Position numbers and translations under genes: made by a program
DNA from: Klebsormidium nitens
Taxonomy: Eukaryota > Plantae > Klebsormidiophyceae
NCBI GenBank assembly: GCA_000708835.1
Contig: DF237727.1
Location: forward strand, 1-34,308
Length of the DNA: 34,308 bases
Reading direction: 5' to 3'
Shown: piece after piece, positions 8,474 through 33,000 of the stretch
Layout of the letters: the number at the start of each line of letters is the position of its first letter
Numbering within the stretch: the first letter of the stretch is position 1
The notes under the pieces: generated by a model
Seen by the model: the letters and a program-made list of their open reading frames with translations, nothing else
What the model was told of the DNA's origin: nothing
The model's database searches: none

Positions 8474-8516
8474 NNNNNNNNNNNNNNNNNNNNTATGTCT
8501 TCGAACTATGTATCTG

Positions 8517-10415
8517 TCATCCCCAGACTCCTGCTCTCGTGAACTCTGCCGGCCTGCGCTCGCCTCTCGCTATGCTCATACAGATCCAAGCTATGTTGCG
8601 AGCTGCGTTGACGTCTCTATTCCACACTATGCGACACAGCGGGTTCGTACACGCTCGCACGTTGTGGCACGTCTTGTAGCTCGTCCTCCCTCGTCCGTCC
8701 TCGTCCTCTCGACCCCCTCCCTCGGTCACCGTCTGGATCCCATCCTCCGTCACCCGCTGCCTCTTGAGCACGGCGAACTTGCCTACGTCCGAGTGGCACG
8801 TGCTGCACACCTGGCTCGTCCTGAACTCATCTATCATGACCACCGTCGCCTTGTGGTGGCTGCTGAGTCGCCTCTTCACCGACTCGCATGGACCACACTG
8901 CCTCTTGGTCCTGCCCGCACCCACCTGTGCTGCACCAAGAGCCACCACGGTCTTTTTCCCTGCCGTGATTTTCTTGCAGGCTCTGTCCACCTCGATCTGC
9001 TTCTTGATCGTCACTCGCCTTCTAAGCTTTCGGACCCTCCTCGCGGTGTGAAAGCGTACCAGGACGTACAAGTTCGCACAGATGAAGGACACCCTCTTCC
9101 CGAAGTCCTCCAGGCTCAAGGTGTTCCCCGAAGGAGCATTCTCGTTGAAGGCTGCCACATCCAGGTCTCTGGACATCCAGGTGTGCATGAGGAACGTCCG
9201 ATTCTTGAATCCCGCTCGGTGGTAGAAGTCCCTGGTCCCCAGGCTGATGATCTCTTCCTGGCGCTCGATTCCGTCCCAATCGCCGGTCACGGCGATGCCG
9301 GTGAGGAAGTCGGGATGCTTTCCTGGGTCCAATCCCACCACGCGCTGCTTGGGGTGTATATGCACCGCTCGGTCCTCCGGAGGGGGCGTCCTCTTCTCCA
9401 CCAAGAAGTACATGCTTGCGGACACTCCGTCCGTGGTGATCCGATCCGCGAAGGTCTTCCCACCGCTCTCCAGCCGTCCGATGGACGGAAAAGCATCGCG
9501 GAGCTCTCCCGGAGCCTTTCTCTTGCCGCTCTTGGGCTGCAGCTCGAGCCATGTGGTAGGAGTGATCGCGATGAAAGGTGCAGAGAAGGAGGCATGAGGC
9601 ACGAGGGAGAATGACCGCAGCTCTCGGTCCGAGAACTCCTCGCTGATGATCCTCATCCAGGGCACGTAGAGGTGAGGTCTGCTCTGGGGCGCCGCAGGCA
9701 GCGGCCCGACCTCAGGCCTGATGGAGTCGACCAGACCCTGCAGGCACTCGATGGCAGCCTCTGAGATCCTCCCACGAATACGGGGGTACTCCGGCAGCAG
9801 CTCTCGGACGCTCTCGTTCGGGCGCCACAACGTGGCGGTCGTCAGCAGCCGGGTGCACGACTCCACATCCTCGTCCGCGTCCCCGAAGAATGGCACATCT
9901 GGAGAAGCCTCTAGCAGGAGTAGCTTCACGAAGGCCCTGTGTCGTGACTGGAAGAGGACAGAGACGTGATTCTTGATGTTACAGAGGAGTTGGTTGCGGA
10001 GCTCCAGGAGGATGTTGGCGATGCGAGGGAGACAGCTGTTGTTCGGACGGTTGGGGCAGAGGGGGAGGTAGTGGTGGACGAATGTTTCGTGGAGGTCTGG
10101 GTCTGCTTGCGGCTTCTTAGAGTACGTACACTGCATCGCGCGTCCGACCAGGTTCTGGTCGATGACGGGTATGGGCCGTCCCTCATCCAGGAGGCGGATG
10201 AAGTGGAGGTTGAGAAAGAGGCATGTCTCGACTCGGATGCGGGTCACCTCCGGAATGATCTCCTCGATCCGATCTCTTATGCCGCGTTCCTGGCAGAGGA
10301 ACTTCCATCCCGTCTGGACCACGGATGTCTCCTTGTCCTTCCTCAGCGTTCTCCGGAGGGTAATATCTGGGCGCTTCCTCTTTGCCTCCTCGGAGTCATC
10401 TGCCTCTTCGTCCAT
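8517..10415 (-). CDS. Fanzor1 (eukaryotic TnpB-like RNA-guided nuclease), 632 aa, apparently intact
   Basis: RuvC-I VVGLDPG; RuvC-II with Gly at the canonical Glu position (VVALGAA) and the alternative Glu in IDEFRTS; CxxC...CxxxxC zinc finger; RuvC-III WNRDVNAARNI; long N-terminal helical region; KRKRP NLS-like motif. Confidence 0.9.
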   Translation of the reverse strand: MDEEADDSEEAKRKRPDITLRRTLRKDKETSVVQTGWKFLCQERGIRDRIEEIIPEVTRIRVETCLFLNLHFIRLLDEGRPIPVIDQNLVGRAMQCTYSKKPQADPDLHETFVHHYLPLCPNRPNNSCLPRIANILLELRNQLLCNIKNHVSVLFQSRHRAFVKLLLLEASPDVPFFGDADEDVESCTRLLTTATLWRPNESVRELLPEYPRIRGRISEAAIECLQGLVDSIRPEVGPLPAAPQSRPHLYVPWMRIISEEFSDRELRSFSLVPHASFSAPFIAITPTTWLELQPKSGKRKAPGELRDAFPSIGRLESGGKTFADRITTDGVSASMYFLVEKRTPPPEDRAVHIHPKQRVVGLDPGKHPDFLTGIAVTGDWDGIERQEEIISLGTRDFYHRAGFKNRTFLMHTWMSRDLDVAAFNENAPSGNTLSLEDFGKRVSFICANLYVLVRFHTARRVRKLRRRVTIKKQIEVDRACKKITAGKKTVVALGAAQVGAGRTKRQCGPCESVKRRLSSHHKATVVMIDEFRTSQVCSTCHSDVGKFAVLKRQRVTEDGIQTVTEGGGREDEDGRGRTSYKTCHNVRACTNPLCRIVWNRDVNAARNIAWICMSIARGERRPAEFTRAGVWG

Positions 10416-10673: not shown

Positions 10674-11927
10674 ATGGAAAACGCTTCGACGGAATGGTCG
10701 AAAGTCTTGCAAGCAGCTAACAGCGGAGACGGTTTCGCAGTAGATCACTTGGTGGAAGGTAAGCTGAAGGGAATACTCCCTGCGTTCGTAGAGGAGGCTT
10801 TCGAAGAACAGTGTTTTCTCTTCTGGAGTAGGGACGGGGAGTACACCGAGGAGATCAGGGCGGCGTGCACCGCACATGACCCTCTGGAACCAGCGGTACA
10901 GAGAGACGTCGACGTCGTGGTCCTTGATGTGCGCTTCATAGACCCCTCCTCCGCTCACAGATTCTTGGGGATAGGGATGGAAGGAGAGTTTGCGGTGAGC
11001 GTTACTTATCACGCGAAGAGCGCAAAGTCCATACGAGTCCTCATATGGGAGGAGGACAGCAGGGAGGACGGCGAGCTGTACGTCAGGGTACGGGGTTGGG
11101 AGGCGAGCGGTTTCAAGCTCGTCAGAGAGTGGACGCCCAGGACCAGAGTCTCGTCGGCCCGAACGAGGATCTCGTTCGGCAAGCCGGAGAGCGAGAGGCC
11201 GAGCATCCTCTTCAAGGGGAGGTCCGTATGTTACACGATCAAGACCTCGGAGCAGATCCCGCAGAACAAGTCTGCCACCGGCGTCAAGAGGGGAAACGTG
11301 AACCTCACGTTAAGGGTCGGCCTGAGAGAGCCCGTCGTGGGCTCAGAAGACGACCTGGTCGTCATGCGGGTGCAAGCGGAATGTATAGTCGTACCAGAGG
11401 TCGGAAAGGGGGTCAAGAGCGTACGCGTTCGTTCCGTTTGTAAGATCGGGGGCTCGCAAGGATCATGCAGTCTCGTGGACGGCAACTCCGGTCACCAAGA
11501 AGAAGGTGCTACTGACTATTGCAATTGGAAGTACGGGGGAGACGTCTTCGACTGCGGCCGTACTCATCTGATAGACAGCGCGCGCCAGACGCATTCGCTG
11601 CTCAGACCGGACACCCTATGGATGCTATCCAGCAAGGGGCTTCAGGCCGTGACGGTCGCGACGGAGCACGAGATGGGCGAGAGCGAGGGCAAGGTCGGAA
11701 TAAAGGCCAGGCTCTCGCGCCTCTTCTCCGACGAGAGCGGCAACAAGCTGGTGACCTGTAGCAGACACCTCAGGATCTCGGTGGTGAGCGACATGGCTTT
11801 CTTGAACGCTTTGGAAAAAGCATGCATGATGTGTCGGATACGGAAGCAGAACGGCAGCTGGAACAAGACTCACGAGCAGAACGTCCGCGCGAAGAGAGAG
11901 AAGCTGATAGCTTCGGCTAGGTTTTAA
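10674..11927 (+). CDS. Hypothetical viral protein, 417 aa
   Basis: Long ATG-initiated ORF, beta-strand-rich centre, no motif confidently recognised. Confidence 0.7.
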   Translation: MENASTEWSKVLQAANSGDGFAVDHLVEGKLKGILPAFVEEAFEEQCFLFWSRDGEYTEEIRAACTAHDPLEPAVQRDVDVVVLDVRFIDPSSAHRFLGIGMEGEFAVSVTYHAKSAKSIRVLIWEEDSREDGELYVRVRGWEASGFKLVREWTPRTRVSSARTRISFGKPESERPSILFKGRSVCYTIKTSEQIPQNKSATGVKRGNVNLTLRVGLREPVVGSEDDLVVMRVQAECIVVPEVGKGVKSVRVRSVCKIGGSQGSCSLVDGNSGHQEEGATDYCNWKYGGDVFDCGRTHLIDSARQTHSLLRPDTLWMLSSKGLQAVTVATEHEMGESEGKVGIKARLSRLFSDESGNKLVTCSRHLRISVVSDMAFLNALEKACMMCRIRKQNGSWNKTHEQNVRAKREKLIASARF

Positions 11928-12852
11928 GGACCGGTGACGAACGGCTCTTCTGCAACCAAGGGTGTTCCAAGGCCTGCGACGCAGTGAGGCGCCCCTTGAC
12001 ATCTCTCGTGAGCAGATTCTGCAGAAAGTTCTTGGCGTCGTTAGTTATGGCCACCCCGTCGTAGTTTGGACTCTTCGACAGGACCGCCTCGAATACCTCC
12101 GACTCGGTCCTGCCGTAGAACGGTCGTGATCCGACCAGCAGGATGTAAGTCAAGACCCCGATGCTCCACTCGTCAGCTTTCAGATCGTACGCCTTCTTCA
12201 GTACCTCTGGAGCTACGAAGTAAGGACTGCCGACGATGTCGTCCAACACTTCTCGCTCTCCACATAATCCAGAGAGGCCGAAATCGATCGCTTTCAGGAG
12301 CGAGTCCTTTTCTTCGCTGGCGAACAAGAAGTTCTCGGGTTTGATATCCCTGTGGATCACTCCCATGCGATGCATGTATGCGACGGAGCTCAATATCTGC
12401 CAGACGATCGGAATTGCGCTCTCCTCCGAGCAACGTCCTCCGACGTCGAGTATGCGGTCGGCCAAGTCACCACCATGACATAGTTCCATGACTATGTACA
12501 CGTTCATGACATCCTCATAAGCCTCTATAAAGTCGACCACGTTATCATGGCGTTGCAACATGCGTAAGATGGTCACCTCGCGGACTACATCGTCCACTTC
12601 TACCTGACTTGTCATCCTGCGTTTCGGAATGACTTTCACCGCCACTCGCTTTCCTCCAGCAATCTTTTTGGCGATAGCGACGTGCGTCCTTCCGAAACTT
12701 CCACTCCCAATCTCGAGTCCAAGCTCATAATCGTCGTAGAATCTCCTCTTGAAAGAAAACACCTTGTTGTCTATAGTTGGCCTGTGTGGGCTAGGCTGTT
12801 CGACAGGCCCCCGTTCCGTGGATCTATCCGGTGTATTCAGACATTGTCCCAT
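11917..12852 (-). CDS. CDPK-related (CRK-like) Ser/Thr kinase, kinase domain only, intronless
   Basis: GSGSFG, VAVK, HRDIKPENFLF, LKAIDFGLS, DIVGSPYFVAPEVL, GSRPFYGRTESE, ALEHPW. The GGRxSEE and SRPFxxRTES motifs resemble plant CRKs. MGQC acylation motif at the N-terminus. Ends right after the kinase domain. Confidence 0.9.
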   Translation of the reverse strand: MGQCLNTPDRSTERGPVEQPSPHRPTIDNKVFSFKRRFYDDYELGLEIGSGSFGRTHVAIAKKIAGGKRVAVKVIPKRRMTSQVEVDDVVREVTILRMLQRHDNVVDFIEAYEDVMNVYIVMELCHGGDLADRILDVGGRCSEESAIPIVWQILSSVAYMHRMGVIHRDIKPENFLFASEEKDSLLKAIDFGLSGLCGEREVLDDIVGSPYFVAPEVLKKAYDLKADEWSIGVLTYILLVGSRPFYGRTESEVFEAVLSKSPNYDGVAITNDAKNFLQNLLTRDVKGRLTASQALEHPWLQKSRSSPVLKT

Positions 12853-21411: not shown

Positions 21412-22281
21412 CAGTCTGTTCAGANNNNNNNNNNNNNNNNNNNNNNNNNNNNNNNNNNNNNNNNNNNNNNNNNNNNNNNNNNNNNNNNNNNNNNNNNNNN
21501 NNNNNNNNNNNNNNNNNNNNNNNNNNNNNNNNNNNNNNNNNNNNNNNNNNNNNNNNNNNNNNNNNNNNNNNNNNNNNNNNNNNNNNNNNNNNNNNNNNNN
21601 NNNNNNNNNNNNNNNNNNNNNNNNNNNNNNNNNNNNNNNNNNNNNNNNNNNNNNNNNNNNNNNNNNNNNNNNNNNNNNNNNNNNNNNNNNNNNNNNNNNN
21701 NNNNNNNNNNNNNNNNNNNNNNNNNNNNNNNNNNNNNNNNNNNNNNNNNNNNNNNNNNNNNNNNNNNNNNNNNNNNNNNNNNNNNNNNNNNNNNNNNNNN
21801 NNNNNNNNNNNNNNNNNNNNNNNNNNNNNNNNNNNNNNNNNNNNNNNNNNNNNNNNNNNNNNNNNNNNNNNNNNNNNNNNNNNNNNNNNNNNNNNNNNNN
21901 NNNNNNNNNNNNNNNNNNNNNNNNNNNNNNNNNNNNNNNNNNNNNNNNNNNNNNNNNNNNNNNNNNNNNNNNNNNNNNNNNNNNNNNNNNNNNNNNNNNN
22001 NNNNNNNNNNNNNNNNNNNNNNNNNNNNNNNNNNNNNNNNNNNNNNNNNNNNNNNNNNNNNNNNNNNNNNNNNNNNNNNNNNNNNNNNNNNNNNNNNNNN
22101 NNNCGGATACTTGCTTTCGGACGCATTGTTTCGGATACTTGCTTTCGGATGCTTCCGCTGTGATATGCCTTTCGGATGCTTCCGCTGTGATATGCCTTTC
22201 GGATGCTCCGATGCTCCCAAGCTCTCGGACGAGACCTTCGGACGCCGATTTCTCGCGTGCCATTTTATTCTGGACAAAGTG
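21412..22281 (-). mobile_element. Second insertion of the same TIR/TA element family; interior lies in the assembly gap
   Basis: TA|CAGTCTGTTCAGA at 21410-21424 is identical to the start of the 7207 TIR up to the gap. GCGTGCCATTTTATTCTGGACAAAGTG|TA at 22255-22283 resembles the 10635 TIR. Confidence 0.8.
22103..22207 (+). repeat. Subterminal tandem repeats of element 2
   Basis: 27-bp unit TTCGGATGCTTCCGCTGTGATATGCCT at 22144-22170 and 22171-22197 plus a partial third copy; CGGATACTTGCTTT also occurs twice. Confidence 0.85.
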
Positions 22282-23404: not shown

Positions 23405-24828
23405 CTAGGTAGAGTCGTAAAATAATTTCTCTTCCACGAACGATTTTTCTGGGATGTTTGCTACATGGTACAGGAAGCGATCTACCAACTTCGACACCCT
23501 ATTCTCGTAGTCCTTCTTGTCTTTCAAGAGCATGGCGCCATTGGCCTTATGAAGGCCGAAGCACGAGTTTCTGCGCGCCCCCTGCTCATCTACATATCCG
23601 TCCGGATTGAAACGAAGCATGACGGTAGGCCGGTTCGCCACGGACTCCAATATCATCATGTTCCGCTTGTTCTCGCATGAGTACGAACCCTAAAACCCCC
23701 CTTATGCTGATTCTCGTCGTTCTCTATCACGATGACGTGCGTGAGTAAGTCCACGAAGACGTCGGGGCGGATCGCGTGGCACGTCTCGCCGTCGATCCGC
23801 TTGTTGAAGTCGAGCTCGAACTCCGGCAGCAACTGCTTCAGCTCTTCGCGCAGCGCTCTCTCCTTGGTCAGGCAGTTGTTCACGACGGGGGCGTCCGGAA
23901 AGAGGTGCATCCGGCACGGTAGGCAATACTCGAGATGATTGGCGATCAGTGTATCGCATAGTGCGCCGCTGCATTTTCTGCACGTACTTATCATGTCTGG
24001 TGTCTTATGCTTCAAACATCGCTTCGCTTCGTGTCGCTTTGACCCCACCAGGGCGAATGATGCGATCGTCTGGCAACCTGCTATCTCGCACTTTGTTGAC
24101 TTCACATTGATCATACCCTCGTCTTCATGTTTGTAACAACGCGTGTGCTTAGCCCCTGGCGGCCCGAAGTTTGCCGTCGTAGAACATCCGGGTTCATCGC
24201 AGTAAGTTGCACAAAGATTGGTCATGATGTCGTCTTTGTGCTTAGAGCAGCGCGTCCGATGTCCTCCAAGTAATCCAAACGATGCCCTCTTCTCACAGAC
24301 GGTCACTTCGCACTTTCTGGCACCGAGATCGACCATGTCATCGTCTTTGTGCCTCGAACAGCGAGTCGGCTTCTCTCCAGCACGACCGAACTTGGGTTGC
24401 GTGGAGCACCCGTCGACACCACAGCGCTTCGCACCAAAAAGTATCATCTTTTCCTCCTTGTGCTTCGTGCATCGACACTTCTTCTTTCCAGCGAATCCGT
24501 AAGAAGCAGCCGTGGGGCAGCCCTTGAAGGTGCACCGTGCAGCAGAGAGACATGTCATGCCCGCTTCCTGGTGTTTCGAGCAGCGGCGTCGCGCCTTCCC
24601 CTCGAAGCCGAAGTTTGCAGACTTCCCGCAGCCCTCTACAACACATCGTGTCGCCTTGAAATTTATCATGTCGATAGCCTTGTGGGTGGAGCAGCGTGTC
24701 GCTTTTTTGTTCCCACGCTCTCCGTACGTTGGTTGCTTCTTGCATCCGACTGTTTCACAGAGCCTGCGGGGTCTGGGGTTGCGGGCCATCTCGGACGCTA
24801 CGTGGTATCCTGCCTTACCCCTACCCAT
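23405..24828 (-). pseudogene. EsV-1-7-type Cys/His-repeat protein with a C-terminal PD-(D/E)XK-like nuclease domain, frameshifted
   Basis: Seven roughly 37-aa C...GC...(A/P).(F/Y)G......RC..H....M repeats, then RPDVFVD...VIVIENDENQH; SCENKR...P.VMLRFNPD continues in another frame from about 23686. Confidence 0.75.
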
Positions 24829-29767: not shown

Positions 29768-29999
29768 AGTCAGACACGCACTCTCAGATGTCTCTCGACA
29801 TGTCCAGCAAGATATTATCTACCGACGGTAGATGACTTACACCAGTTCTTTTCTTCCTGGGATCTATCTCTCCAGATAGCGTCTCCCACGCCCGCAACGA
29901 CACCTGTCCCTTCCTCCTAGTGCTGCATGACAGCTTGTGCTCCTGCTAGTCGCTGACCGAGCATTTCTTGGAGCAATACGCCCTAAAACCCATCATCTT

Positions 30000-30185
30000 C
30001 CAAGGTCGATAGGTACTTCAGACTGCGTAGGAGTTTGAGCACCATGAAAGCTACGTCGGTGATGTACTCTCCGATGGATCAATCACTGAACAGACCAAGA
30101 CATCACTACAATTGTCCAGTGGTCTGTCAGGCTAAGCATGACATATCTGCCATGGCTCCATCTTGCAGTCGCCCCTAGGGGCGAA
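30000..30185 (-). ncRNA. Predicted Fanzor2 omegaRNA (boundaries approximate)
   Basis: Directly downstream of the stop codon: perfect 16-bp palindrome TCGCCCCTAGGGGCGA (30169-30184) and an ACAGACC/GGTCTGT stem-loop (30090-30127). Confidence 0.5.
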
Positions 30186-31931
30186 TTACTTCCTTCGTAT
30201 CGCACGAAGTAGTATGTTCCGAGCACCATTGCAATCCCTGTCTATGACTGCGAAGCAGCTTCCGCACTTGAAGGTCCTCGCACCCTCTAGGTTTTGCTTT
30301 ACTTCCCCGCACCTGCCACAGGTCTTGCTCGTGTAATGCTCGGAAACGATCAGGACTCTCACTCCCCTGCCAGCAGCCTTGGCTATCAGCCGCTGTTTGA
30401 ACTTGTAGTGCGACAGGAACGACATCTGCCTGACACTCTTGCTCCCGATCCGCCGTTGGAATCTTCGGACCATCTCGCTGGTCTCGAACGTCGGCAACAG
30501 AATGATCTTCGCTTTTCGTGTGAGGAAGTCCGCGACCTTGTAGTGCATCTCGTCACGCAGATGAGCTATCTTTCTTCGTGTCTTGATGATTCTCAATCTC
30601 ACTGCTCTTTGTTTTTTCCGATGGTCCTTCGGGATGCGCTTCTCGAAAGCGAGTAGTCTGTCCAAGGTGATAGCCAACGAGAACAGGCGTTGTGCACACC
30701 CATCGCCCAATTTGTATGCCTCGCTGGGGCTGTAGGCGGTCAGGAATGTTCTGACTCCCGGGTCCAGGGCTATCACTGCCTCTCTCGTCTCGTTGATGAG
30801 AGATTTGGTGTTTCCCTTCACTTTAGCTGGATGCGTTTTTGAGTAGGGCAAGAGGAGATAATACTTGGCACCATCGAATTGCAGCTGACAGTCCTTGGTG
30901 ATCTCGCCGATGGCACCCAACGTCTCGAACTCCCAAGGGCAATAATCTCCGTAGATGATCAGGGTGCGATTGCCCCTGCGCTTGACAGCAGTCTTTGCAA
31001 TCCCCAAGCACCACCCCTTCGAGTCCTCTTTTTTCTTCGTCTTGAAGGAAAATCGGAACCCGGTGATGTTCCCACGTTCTCGATTGCTGAAGCAGGATTT
31101 AGCATTCTTGGCCGCTTCGAAAACCGCAGCGGCCCTCACGTCCTTGGGTGTCTTCAAGAGGTGTGGCTTGTCTCCATTCACTTCAACTGGGGTGATCAAG
31201 TCCCGGAGGTACATCTTGTTGAAGCTCGCTGTCTCGTTCATGAGGAACACTGCCTTGTTGTAGCTGTATCGAGCCGCGTGCCTCCAGTCGTTCAGCATCC
31301 TCTTCTGATACTTCTTTGGGAGGATCCGAACTTTCCGCATCCTGATCAACTCCTCTGCTTCTTCGTGCTCGCTTTCTTCGTCCTTTGGTACCGTCTGTTC
31401 CTCCTCCGTAACGTCTTCTCCCGTTCCATCGACAACCGAACACCTGAACGACCGCGAGCACGTCCTCTGCCAGCTCTGCCTCTGGAGACTTATCGTCTTG
31501 TTGGAGAACCACGAGGCGGACACCGTGTCTTTCGAAGAACCACGAGAGCAGATCGAATCCGAAACGACACAGTCTGTCTTTTGAGGCAACCACAACCTCT
31601 CGTACAAGTCCCTTCTCGCTCTGTTCCAGAAGGGATAGAAGTCCCTTCCTCTTGAAATTGAGGCCCGATCCGACGTCGCTGATAACTGAGTGTCCGGGGT
31701 ACTGGTCACGCATATATGACTCTTGACGTCGAAGATCGTTCTTCTGTTTCTGGCTGGACACTCTGGTATAGATGTAGGAGGCGCGCTCGCTGGAGGGATC
31801 GAGGCTCTTGAGGTCGTAGATACGCTTGCCTCCAGGGCTACGCTCGACCTTGATCTTCCCGGCAGCTTCCCATCTGATGAGAGTCCTAGTGCACACACCG
31901 AAGTGGTCGGCTGCTTCGGACAACCTGACAT
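30186..31931 (-). CDS. tnpB: Fanzor2 / IS607-type TnpB RNA-guided nuclease (581 aa from 31931, or 384 aa from the Met at 31340)
   Basis: RuvC-I VIALDPGVRTF; RuvC-II with Pro at the canonical Glu position (IILLPTF) and the alternative Glu in VSEHYTSKTC; CxxC/CxxC zinc finger; IDRDCNGARNI. Confidence 0.92.
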   Translation of the reverse strand: MSGCPKQPTTSVCALGLSSDGKLPGRSRSSVALEASVSTTSRASIPPASAPPTSIPECPARNRRTIFDVKSHICVTSTPDTQLSATSDRASISRGRDFYPFWNRARRDLYERLWLPQKTDCVVSDSICSRGSSKDTVSASWFSNKTISLQRQSWQRTCSRSFRCSVVDGTGEDVTEEEQTVPKDEESEHEEAEELIRMRKVRILPKKYQKRMLNDWRHAARYSYNKAVFLMNETASFNKMYLRDLITPVEVNGDKPHLLKTPKDVRAAAVFEAAKNAKSCFSNRERGNITGFRFSFKTKKKEDSKGWCLGIAKTAVKRRGNRTLIIYGDYCPWEFETLGAIGEITKDCQLQFDGAKYYLLLPYSKTHPAKVKGNTKSLINETREAVIALDPGVRTFLTAYSPSEAYKLGDGCAQRLFSLAITLDRLLAFEKRIPKDHRKKQRAVRLRIIKTRRKIAHLRDEMHYKVADFLTRKAKIILLPTFETSEMVRRFQRRIGSKSVRQMSFLSHYKFKQRLIAKAAGRGVRVLIVSEHYTSKTCGRCGEVKQNLEGARTFKCGSCFAVIDRDCNGARNILLRAIRRK

Positions 31932-31938
31932 ACCCCAT
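31183..31938 (-). CDS. tnpA: IS607-family serine recombinase/transposase TnpA
   Basis: N-terminal MerR-like HTH (EAADHFGVCTRTLIRW), YTRVSSQKQ catalytic Ser motif, DVGSGLNFKRKGL, DRLCRFGFDL, ELAEDV and RRY. ATG at 31938. Confidence 0.95.
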   Translation of the reverse strand: MGYVRLSEAADHFGVCTRTLIRWEAAGKIKVERSPGGKRIYDLKSLDPSSERASYIYTRVSSQKQKNDLRRQESYMRDQYPGHSVISDVGSGLNFKRKGLLSLLEQSEKGLVREVVVASKDRLCRFGFDLLSWFFERHGVRLVVLQQDDKSPEAELAEDVLAVVQVFGCRWNGRRRYGGGTDGTKGRRKRARRSRGVDQDAESSDPPKEVSEEDAERLEARGSIQLQQGSVPHERDSELQQDVPPGLDHPS

Positions 31939-31956
31939 CTGTGTTTGACATACCCC
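31926..31956 (-). repeat. IS607 left-end direct repeats (11 bp, two copies 20 bp apart)
   Basis: TGACATACCCC at 31926-31936 and 31946-31956; the first overlaps the tnpA and Fanzor2 start codons. Confidence 0.7.
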
Positions 31957-32109
31957 TATAGAAAAGAGGTCAGAGTTTGAACGCACTTGTCTGCGATCGT
32001 TCATCCAACCGTAAAAACACGTAAGGTAACCCTATAGCTCTCCCAAGTTTTTTTTAAACGATAAGCGTCGATATAGGGCCGTCGGTCTCCGTAACCGAAG
32101 TCAGGCACC

Positions 32110-33000
32110 ATGGAGCATACCGAGCGTGCACCGACCTCGCCCATCGAGTCCGTCGACGCGGACGTGCTGCTGGAACTGCTCGACAGACATTCGGACATGA
32201 GGGCCTCTTCCGTCGCCTCCCTGGCATGCACCTCGAGGAGCTTCAGAGACGCCACTGGAAGGGCTTGGCCGTTGATGATGGCAGCATACGAACGAAGGTG
32301 TGACGAAACGTCCAGAGCGAGGCCTTCCATAGACCTGGGCCGATGCGTCGATCCACTGGCGTGCGAGGAAGACTGCGAGTATGAGGCGGACACCACGCCC
32401 TCGGGAAAACCATACGTGAGCTTCTCCGTCCGGAATCTCATGATGGAGGCGGAGAAGGAGGCCGCGTTGATGCCCGTGTCAGCAGCCAGAAAGACCTTCT
32501 TCCTTGCGTCCGAGGATTTGAGGTCGCTGCGAGCACACAAAGACGTGCACGCGAGGAAGTTCTTCCGCTTCCGCGACGTCATCGAGGCGACGATGCTACG
32601 CTTCGGGCGGAGAGAGGCCATGAAGAAGATGCTGGCGTACGCGAGGAAGCGAGACAGGGCTCAGGATGCTCGAGCTTCGAGGTGGCGGGAAGTGGAGGAG
32701 ATCTCTCGCTCCACCGTCCAAGAGAGCGACTGGCCGTGCTTTCAAGACCTCCTGGAGATAGCGGGGGACTACCTGAGGAAGGGGACGGGCGGCTTGCGAC
32801 TCGTGAGGGAACGGTGCAAGAGATTCCAACTGTTCTTGGCCATGGTAGGTCAGGGGGCATGGAGCTGGCCGGAACCCTACTTCCTGATGCCTCACGAGAA
32901 GGGAATCGTGCAGCACCTGCACGTGGGTTACTGCCTGACGGGAGACAGGCGGTTCGTCCAGGACGCGATCAGGGCGGTCAGGGACAGGCGTGCGATTTAG
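32110..33000 (+). CDS. F-box-like protein with an XPA-C-like helical motif
   Basis: VDADVLLELL......VASLACTSRSFRD (F-box-like); VSAARKTFFL...DL..L.......F...DV..A....FG (XPA C-terminal-like). Confidence 0.6.
   Translation: MEHTERAPTSPIESVDADVLLELLDRHSDMRASSVASLACTSRSFRDATGRAWPLMMAAYERRCDETSRARPSIDLGRCVDPLACEEDCEYEADTTPSGKPYVSFSVRNLMMEAEKEAALMPVSAARKTFFLASEDLRSLRAHKDVHARKFFRFRDVIEATMLRFGRREAMKKMLAYARKRDRAQDARASRWREVEEISRSTVQESDWPCFQDLLEIAGDYLRKGTGGLRLVRERCKRFQLFLAMVGQGAWSWPEPYFLMPHEKGIVQHLHVGYCLTGDRRFVQDAIRAVRDRRAI

Follow-up and report, generated by a model that had tools for sequence, protein, structure and literature searches.

On the minus strand of contig DF237727.1 of the Klebsormidium nitens assembly GCA_000708835.1 (positions 1 to 34,308; this whole stretch is referred to below as the window), an IS607-type insertion sequence carries two overlapping genes. 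One, tnpA (31183..31938), encodes a 251-amino acid (aa) IS607-type serine recombinase, counted from Met 31938, and the other, a 581-aa open reading frame (ORF) in the +1 frame of tnpA (30186..31931), encodes a nuclease of the Fanzor2/TnpB family together with an N-terminal extension. As far as the comparison of sequences can establish it, our analysis confirms that the two-frame coding of the front part of the nuclease inside tnpA is genuine and under selection. We consider it likely that this is an IS607 tnpA of the pro-Fanzor/Fanzor2 clade, on which the N-terminal part of the nuclease has been overprinted in the +1 frame, and that the arrangement was inherited from cyanobacteria. The part shown to be under selection comprises some 100–120 codons lying over the resolvase catalytic codons (~31730-31400), and its predicted product is a strand (SWFS) preceded by a short helix (P-x-W ... 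LWLP); in a mimivirus Fanzor2, the homologous domain lies against RuvC and is in contact with the guide RNA.

The start region of the two genes reads ACAG-ATG-GGGT-ATG-TCA on the minus strand, with the ATG of tnpA (31938) and that of the +1 frame (31931) 7 nt apart. The former has C at -3 and G at +4, the latter G at -3 and T at +4; both AUG contexts are intermediate. ATG 31938 is the most plausible start of the tnpA frame, which ends at the stop codon 31185-31183. From 31931 the +1 frame is free of stops to 30186, and its Met1 is the sole Met before Met198 (31340, MRKVRILPKK), the canonical TnpB N-terminus. The first 197 codons of the +1 ORF overlap tnpA, whose frame goes 157 nt beyond Met198 as a non-conserved tail. 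A first-pass annotation, made from the sequence alone, had given the positions of the two ATGs, their spacing and their -3 contexts (a pyrimidine and a G), and had stated that the second frame lacks stops and further Met codons for 197 codons; on re-reading the sequence, both statements are correct. It had also described about 750 nt of dual coding. Both frames are indeed open over that length, but double constraint is demonstrable only at ~31730-31400: upstream of this interval tnpA alone is constrained, and downstream of ~31400, in the tnpA tail, the TnpB frame alone is conserved. The dual-coding region is also spanned by a 258-aa antisense ORF (30879-31655, plus strand), which probably results simply from the scarcity of stops in this sequence.

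The product of tnpA matches in Pfam a MerR-type helix-turn-helix (HTH; E 1.7e-7; ~31920-31816, minus strand), followed by a Resolvase catalytic domain (E 1.8e-19; ~31776-31414, minus strand) in which the RVSS motif is present, and it ends in a non-conserved C-terminal tail (~31400-31186, minus strand). A serine recombinase with an N-terminal MerR-like HTH ahead of the catalytic domain, and a tnpB (RuvC plus zinc ribbon) directly downstream on the same strand, together place the element in the IS607 family. With TnpA as the tblastn query, 47 viral and 80 cyanobacterial loci align over residues 1-178 only. An insert at 31341-31450 (minus strand), which in outline recurs in the close relatives P0002 and P0003, is acidic in the nuclease frame and encodes KGRRKRARRSR in the TnpA tail, a sequence that resembles a nuclear localisation signal for TnpA.

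Stop codons in the +1 frame of tnpA were counted against a null of synonymous-codon shuffling, with the +2 frame as control. In the window alone, 3.9 such stops are expected and none is seen (P(0) = 0.005), with 0 against 1.4 expected in codons 1-70 and 0 against 2.4 in codons 71-178. Long alternative-frame ORFs are common in the GC-rich window, and for this reason we treat the value as suggestive only. The comparison across relatives is, on the sequences aligned here, decisive against chance, and the effect it brings out is regional. A scan of viral contigs with TnpA recovered 47 giant-virus loci at 34-55% identity; a scan with the canonical TnpB core recovered one weak locus only. Nearly all of the viral loci have TnpB in the +1 frame, open over 365-851 nt of the tnpA gene before it. 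Across the tnpA core, these loci together hold 89 +1-frame stops against 244 expected, with 686 against 687 in the +2 frame. Regional counts, taken over 39 viral and 67 cyanobacterial loci, give for codons 71-178 only 6 stops against 137.8 expected in the viruses and none against 164.7 expected in the cyanobacteria, where the +2-frame control stands at 813 against 799. The cyanobacterial codons 1-70 are moderately depleted (24 stops, 53.7 expected). It is therefore for tnpA codons 71-178 only that the second frame is kept open beyond expectation with the control behaving as it should. The first-pass annotation had pointed to homologues as the place to look for stop avoidance, and had named stops in the overlap as an observation that would speak against its proposal. 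Avoidance is plain in codons 71-178 of viral and cyanobacterial loci alike, but it fails in the first 70 codons of the viral loci, where homologues do carry such stops. An outlier among the loci (L041, GVMAG-M-3300023174-55) has tnpA only, with no downstream TnpB match; this tnpA, at 20% GC, holds 28 +1-frame stops where 26.7 are expected, and so is free of the overlap constraint.

Synonymous sites in tnpA agree with this regional picture. For residues of tnpA shared by two diverged relatives, we compared the rate at which the codons are identical with that expected from codon usage. In the viral genes, tnpA codons 1-70 have a ratio of 0.97-1.04 and non-overlapping tnpB one of 1.01-1.07, and in tnpA it climbs to 1.27 in codons 71-110, 1.50 in codons 111-145 and 1.16 in codons 146-178; thirteen non-redundant cyanobacterial genes repeat this pattern, peaking at 1.86-1.94. 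The older frame thus varies less at its synonymous sites, and the reduction is confined to the overlap. The constraint can be followed to single residues. Of 52 non-redundant sequences, 51 encode the invariant Leu104 of tnpA by CTG or TTG, two codons that supply 23% of Leu in the same genes and that yield a +1-frame Trp here. At tnpA codons 102, 112, 115, 142 and 143, the +1-frame residues (P, S, L, S and W) are 87-96% conserved, while the tnpA residues are conserved at 38-65%. A further measure, whole-gene +1-frame amino-acid identity against the shuffle (z 21.6), was dropped in favour of these regional tests, as its +2 control was also high (z 13.9).

All coordinates of the nuclease ORF that follow are on the minus strand. 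Residues ~1-85 of its extension (31677..31931) overlap the HTH region of tnpA and are stop-free here, not conserved in sequence and predicted to be disordered. They are followed by the conserved overprinted block at residues ~86-150 (31482..31676), with P-F-W, LWLPQKTD and SWFS in the +1 frame of the tnpA catalytic codons; judged by its conservation among relatives, this block is the core of real dual coding. A linker leads from the block to the canonical TnpB start (31341..31481); by alignment and translation it holds a lineage-specific insert, and its predicted local distance difference test (pLDDT) scores are low. The canonical TnpB/Fanzor2 core (WED, REC, RuvC and zinc finger parts) begins at Met198 (30189..31340), an assignment supported by Pfam, AlphaFold2 (AF2) and Foldseek. 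In Pfam the 581-aa ORF matches HTH_OrfB_IS605 at 199-228 and Cas12f1-like_TNB at 508-573 (E 3e-19). The catalytic residues are intact, namely D390 (of DPG), E531 and D566, the last invariant among relatives: in ALDPGVRT, D390 and G392 are invariant, as are R565 and D566, and E531 lies within SEHYTSKTC, seven residues ahead of the first Cys. A DPG in RuvC-I and a catalytic Glu moved to just before the zinc finger are the marks of the Fanzor2/pro-Fanzor clade (PMC10711439, PMC13565253), and both are found here. An AF2 model of the protein built from 53 sequences has pLDDT 80-95 in the core. The only confident elements in the extension are a helix (104-112) and a strand (144-148), and these coincide with the conserved motifs; residues 1-98 are predicted to be disordered, with pLDDT below 40 over residues ~1-85.

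Among the Foldseek matches (9b0l, ranked top, 8h1j and 8iaz), the best in both sequence and fold is PDB 9b0l_P, that is ApmFz2 (mimivirus L79). Met198 aligns to ApmFz2 residue 131. A profile of 29 full-length ORFs reaches ApmFz2 residue 77 (E 2e-74; envelope from 40), pairing SWFS with the ApmFz2 SWYE and aligning the SWFS region to ApmFz2 residues 77-90; PDB TnpBs align from about profile position 158. The nuclease accordingly has an N-terminal domain before the TnpB core, as ApmFz2 does, of which only part aligns; the P-x-W/LWLP part of the extension has no alignment to 9B0L in the profile comparison. The ApmFz2 domain is structured by cryo-electron microscopy, and part of it makes the RuvC fold complete and is in touch with the guide RNA; the domain was also found folded in recombinant protein made from the annotated ORF, while residues 1-53 are reported to be a disordered nuclear localisation signal (PMC11832414). 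The Fanzor2 N-terminal domain and nuclear localisation signal have thus been published already (PMC11832414, PMC10530073). The two proteins are alike in that ApmFz2 has a 130-residue extension before its TnpB start, the DPG motif and the relocated Glu, and SWFS corresponds to its structured RuvC-R segment. They differ in the linker before the core, which is acidic in the window protein, the ApmFz2 'thumb' being basic. The ApmFz2 domain has moreover been called unique to Fanzor2, in a structure paper that makes no mention of tnpA or of an overlap (PMC11832414), whereas in our data the homologous block is present also in cyanobacterial TnpBs and lies inside tnpA. The first-pass assignment of the extension to the Fanzor2/TnpB protein is supported, and FYPFWN, LWLPQKTD and SWFS, named there as motifs of other viral IS607 TnpB N-termini, turn out to be the conserved P-x-W, LWLPTKTD and SWFS blocks in alignments of viral and cyanobacterial IS607 TnpBs.

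A word-based protein search found cyanobacterial TnpBs of 512-580 aa that cover 91-99% of the 581-aa query and have the same motifs. Scanning of genomes yielded 80 cyanobacterial IS607 loci; all but one of these (79) have TnpB in the +1 frame of tnpA and open for 100-225 codons above its canonical start, usually over all of tnpA. The frame of tnpA is broken and the +1 frame free of stops in 24 of the 80, with the reverse in four; tnpA decays while the +1 frame stays open, and the extension is thus preserved in its own right. The comparison with other IS607 lineages took in seven elements, namely H. pylori IS607 and ISChh1 together with those of Lactobacillus, Streptomyces, Mycobacterium, Paraclostridium and a Calothrix plasmid. 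In these the two genes overlap by -57 to +38 nt, and each tnpA holds 9-30 +1-frame stops, at expectation. Dual coding is present in 79 of 80 cyanobacterial loci and missing in the seven other lineages, and so, by sequence comparison, it is a trait of the clade of pro-Fanzor plus Fanzor2 (named in PMC10711439) that was in place before these elements entered eukaryotic viruses.

The cyanobacterial ancestry of Fanzor2 has been described before (PMC10711439, PMC3627910). The pro-Fanzor IS607 TnpBs of Yoon et al. 2023 (PMC10711439; e.g. ISArma1 of Arthrospira) share with the present element the tnpA-tnpB order, the +1 frame, the motifs and the DPG/alternative Glu; their hosts are bacterial, so that scanning-type initiation is not applicable there. 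In PMC10711439 we found no description of a whole-gene overlap or of a shared N-terminal block. Canonical IS607 (H. pylori), ISChh1 and IS1535-like elements likewise consist of an HTH serine recombinase followed by TnpB, often +1, between ends with subterminal repeats, but their genes overlap by 4-38 nt or are separated by a gap, and their +1-frame stops are at expectation; a short orfA/orfB overlap is known in IS607 (PMC6188088, PMC3673617). A further likeness is to de novo genes that arise by overprinting in viruses (PMC8227390), where a younger frame over an older gene is also partly disordered, taxon-restricted and a source of synonymous constraint. Here, unlike in those cases, the product is an added N-terminal domain of the adjacent gene, and the carrier is a bacterial insertion sequence. 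In the limited set of literature that we searched, there was no description of the overlap across the whole of tnpA, of an N-terminal domain encoded inside tnpA in another frame, of such a domain in cyanobacterial elements, or of synonymous constraint imposed on a transposase gene.

The +1-frame ATG sits in conserved Tyr-Val codons of the tnpA N-terminus, which reads ATG GGG TAT GTC in the window and [ATG/ATT/TTG] NNN AAR TAT GTC in most cyanobacteria. An ATG in the same Tyr-Val codons is present in 28 of 43 non-redundant cyanobacterial loci, and loci with TAC for Tyr are without it. The two start codons are 7 nt apart in the window, as against 10 nt for most cyanobacteria and 4 nt for some of the viral loci, and the conserved spacing that the first-pass annotation had proposed to look for is therefore not borne out. 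In 15 viral loci with a +1-frame start inside tnpA, intervening ATGs are not depleted; the conservation in eukaryotic and viral relatives that leaky scanning would be expected to leave is not seen. In many of the cyanobacterial loci L049-L057 and L063-L073, a TATAAT/TACAAT-like box at ~45 nt upstream of tnpA precedes TTGAGGA and a tnpA start codon other than ATG (ATT, TTG or ATC), and the +1-frame ATG comes 10 nt on; such a weak tnpA start beside a strong nuclease start could bias initiation to the nuclease. In the window there are two further ATGs upstream on the minus strand, at 31951, which opens a 21-codon third-frame ORF running across both starts, and at 32004, which is in the tnpA frame and would add 22 codons.

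The presumed ends of the element, at both of which GGTATGTCA-type motifs cluster, also bear on the ATG at 31931. Two exact direct copies of GGTATGTCA lie 20 bp apart on the minus strand (31946-31954 and 31926-31934), and the second holds the +1-frame ATG. At the presumed right end, just 3' of the Fanzor2 stop, GATATGTCA (30139-30147, minus strand) and GGTCTGTCA (30121-30129, plus strand) lie in opposite orientation, each with one mismatch to GGTATGTCA. Elements of the IS607 family lack terminal inverted repeats, duplicate no target sequence and carry subterminal repeats to which TnpA binds. Helically phased subterminal motifs have been described for IS607-family ends (PMC6188088); from their arrangement, the GGTATGTCA pair are probably left-end subterminal TnpA-binding motifs, and 30121..30147 is the probable right-end and guide-RNA region. 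A search of 29800-32200 against Rfam returned no match.

Several observations weigh against the reading that we favour. Codons 1-70 of the viral loci contain 53 stops against 58.5 expected, which is the chance rate, and the openness of the same 70 codons in the window is not significant alone (chance ~0.25). The 197-aa extension has no match in a Pfam scan, and its residues 1-98, 119-136 and 151-184 are of low AF2 confidence. The Tyr-Val ATG and openness of the 5' part show no association (Fisher p 0.63 in viral and 0.70 in cyanobacterial loci), and the nested ATG is also accounted for by the tnpA codons and the repeated GGTATGTCA. The ATGs at 31951 and 32004 could interfere, depending on where transcription starts, and the copy in the algal scaffold may be a silent relic. 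Given the varying spacing, the TAC loci, the absence of a link to openness, the overlap with GGTATGTCA and the undepleted ATGs, interpretation of the nested ATG as a conserved translational device is not supported by these comparisons.

The first-pass annotation had gone further, and saw in the nested AUGs and the long overlap a eukaryote-specific adaptation, with leaky scanning on a capped mRNA replacing bacterial translational coupling. AUGs 7 nt apart with C and then G at -3, an extension without any other Met, and the documented competition of close AUGs (PMC9743702) all fit this proposal. We nevertheless hold it to be unlikely, and as an adaptation it is contradicted by the cyanobacterial loci: the same architecture in 79 of 80 cyanobacterial loci, and the Tyr-Val ATG in 28 of 43, predate eukaryotic hosts, viral stops are at chance in the first 70 codons, and there is neither depletion of intervening ATGs nor association of the ATG with openness. 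As a route of expression in this copy, leaky scanning is plausible from the layout, since neighbouring out-of-frame AUGs are in competition for initiation in mRNAs of yeast, humans and viruses (PMC9743702). The bicistronic mRNAs of turnip yellow mosaic virus (p69/p206) and influenza B virus (NB/NA) likewise have AUGs a few nt apart, each at the head of a long frame that overlaps the other (PMC9743702, which cites Matsuda and Dreher 2006 and Williams and Lamb 1989); those are experimentally shown cases from RNA viruses, whereas here the choice between AUGs is a prediction from sequence, the spacing varies among viral relatives and the layout is inherited from bacteria. A serious alternative for this copy, doubtful though we find it, is that the nuclease, conserved block included, has a transcript of its own that begins within tnpA, with initiation at an internal AUG in relatives and at a near-cognate codon here, which would render the open 5' third and ATG 31931 incidental. 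In 23 of the 39 viral loci there are stops in the first 70 codons and internal +1-frame ATGs are used, the internal ATG lying exactly 64 nt past the tnpA ATG in four of them and 67-73 nt past it in three more; the undepleted ATGs, and a 5' openness in the window that chance would give at ~0.25, point the same way. This has to be set against a window without an AUG between 31931 and 31340, and a cyanobacterial 5' part that is moderately stop-poor (24 against 53.7).

Two further accounts were weighed. If Fanzor2 started at Met198 (31340), the upstream frame would be an untranslated relic or a chance product of GC-rich sequence. Met198 does align with canonical TnpB N-termini (HTH_OrfB_IS605; PDB TnpBs), many database models of relatives begin there (~370-435 aa) and alternative-frame ORFs are common in the window, but against this account stand family-wide, frame-specific stop avoidance and synonymous constraint, an extension that is kept when tnpA decays, and its homology to the structured 9B0L domain; we judge it very improbable. 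A fusion of TnpA and Fanzor2, by +1 ribosomal frameshifting or by splicing, could be read from the +1 position of TnpB in nearly all loci and from the public K. nitens model (P0001), which joins tnpA 1-60 to +1-frame 103-581. Frameshifting, however, needs a short overlap only, not a frame open across the whole gene; no slippery site was identified; bacteria without spliceosomal splicing share the layout; and a chimera is what a gene finder is expected to produce when both frames look coding. We give the fusion almost no credence.

Overprinting in the clade, with cyanobacterial inheritance, is consequently the explanation that we adopt. The conserved block would have been born de novo in cyanobacterial ancestors, when tnpB was extended upstream into tnpA; we infer this direction from the fact that tnpA belongs to a universal recombinase family while the +1-frame block is confined to this clade. 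Transfer from these ancestors to eukaryotic viruses and eukaryotes would have come later. The first ~85 codons would be a variable, probably disordered leader, of which the long form apparently needs only that it stay open. It seems very likely that, across the family, translation of the nuclease takes in the conserved block. For the copy studied here, ATG 31931 is, as the first-pass annotation implied, the sole AUG able to include the conserved N-terminal block, and for that reason the most likely route would be one 5' transcript on which ribosomes choose AUG 31938 (TnpA) or AUG 31931 (Fanzor2), thereby setting the ratio of the two proteins; whether 31931 is the start actually used here is, in our estimate, a matter of even chances.

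The surroundings of the element suggest that the scaffold is giant-virus-derived DNA in an algal assembly, either an endogenous element or a co-assembled virus, since an EsV-1-7 cysteine-rich repeat protein (23656-24828, minus strand; seven repeats, E 9e-61), a Ser/Thr protein kinase (11917-12852, minus strand) and two TnpB-like genes occur together. The host to which the scaffold is assigned, Klebsormidium nitens, is eukaryotic, as expected of a Fanzor2. The second TnpB/Fanzor-like ORF (632 aa; 8517-10415, minus strand) has a Cas12f1-like TNB domain (E 6.8e-6), no BLAST similarity to the Fanzor2 at 30186..31931 and no tnpA nearby; a gap of 20 N (8474-8493) lies just past its 3' end. A run of 679 N (21425-22103), an assembly gap, explains an apparent GC trough of 21% at 21-22 kb and a spurious ORF cluster.

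Public annotation of the family is inconsistent. The model P0001 (537 aa, 'putative Transcription regulator HTH'; 30189-31938, minus strand) contains a predicted intron of ~133 nt and looks like a gene-finder artefact of dual coding. Database models of relatives fall about evenly into two length classes, ~370-435 aa with the canonical start and ~510-620 aa with the extension, and newer NCBI models of the cyanobacterial genes are mostly of the short form. Nuclease constructs that begin at the canonical Met would miss a domain which, in the solved structure, is in contact with RuvC and with the guide RNA.

These results relocate the origin of the Fanzor2 N-terminal domain, which occurs in cyanobacterial elements and looks to have been born inside the coding sequence of another gene. 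They also tie the evolution of transposase and nuclease together nucleotide by nucleotide, as ~100 codons of tnpA are filtered by two proteins, and they raise the testable idea that the TnpA:TnpB ratio is set by the choice of start codon. A bolder and decidedly speculative proposal, which we think improbable as it stands, is that pro-Fanzor elements, with ORF starts within ~10 nt of each other, were pre-adapted to express both proteins from one capped eukaryotic mRNA, the 'Fanzor2-specific' domain of the nuclease having been born de novo by overprinting on the transposase gene. If true, such pre-adaptation would help to explain why this clade, and not other TnpB insertion sequences, colonised giant viruses and eukaryotes.

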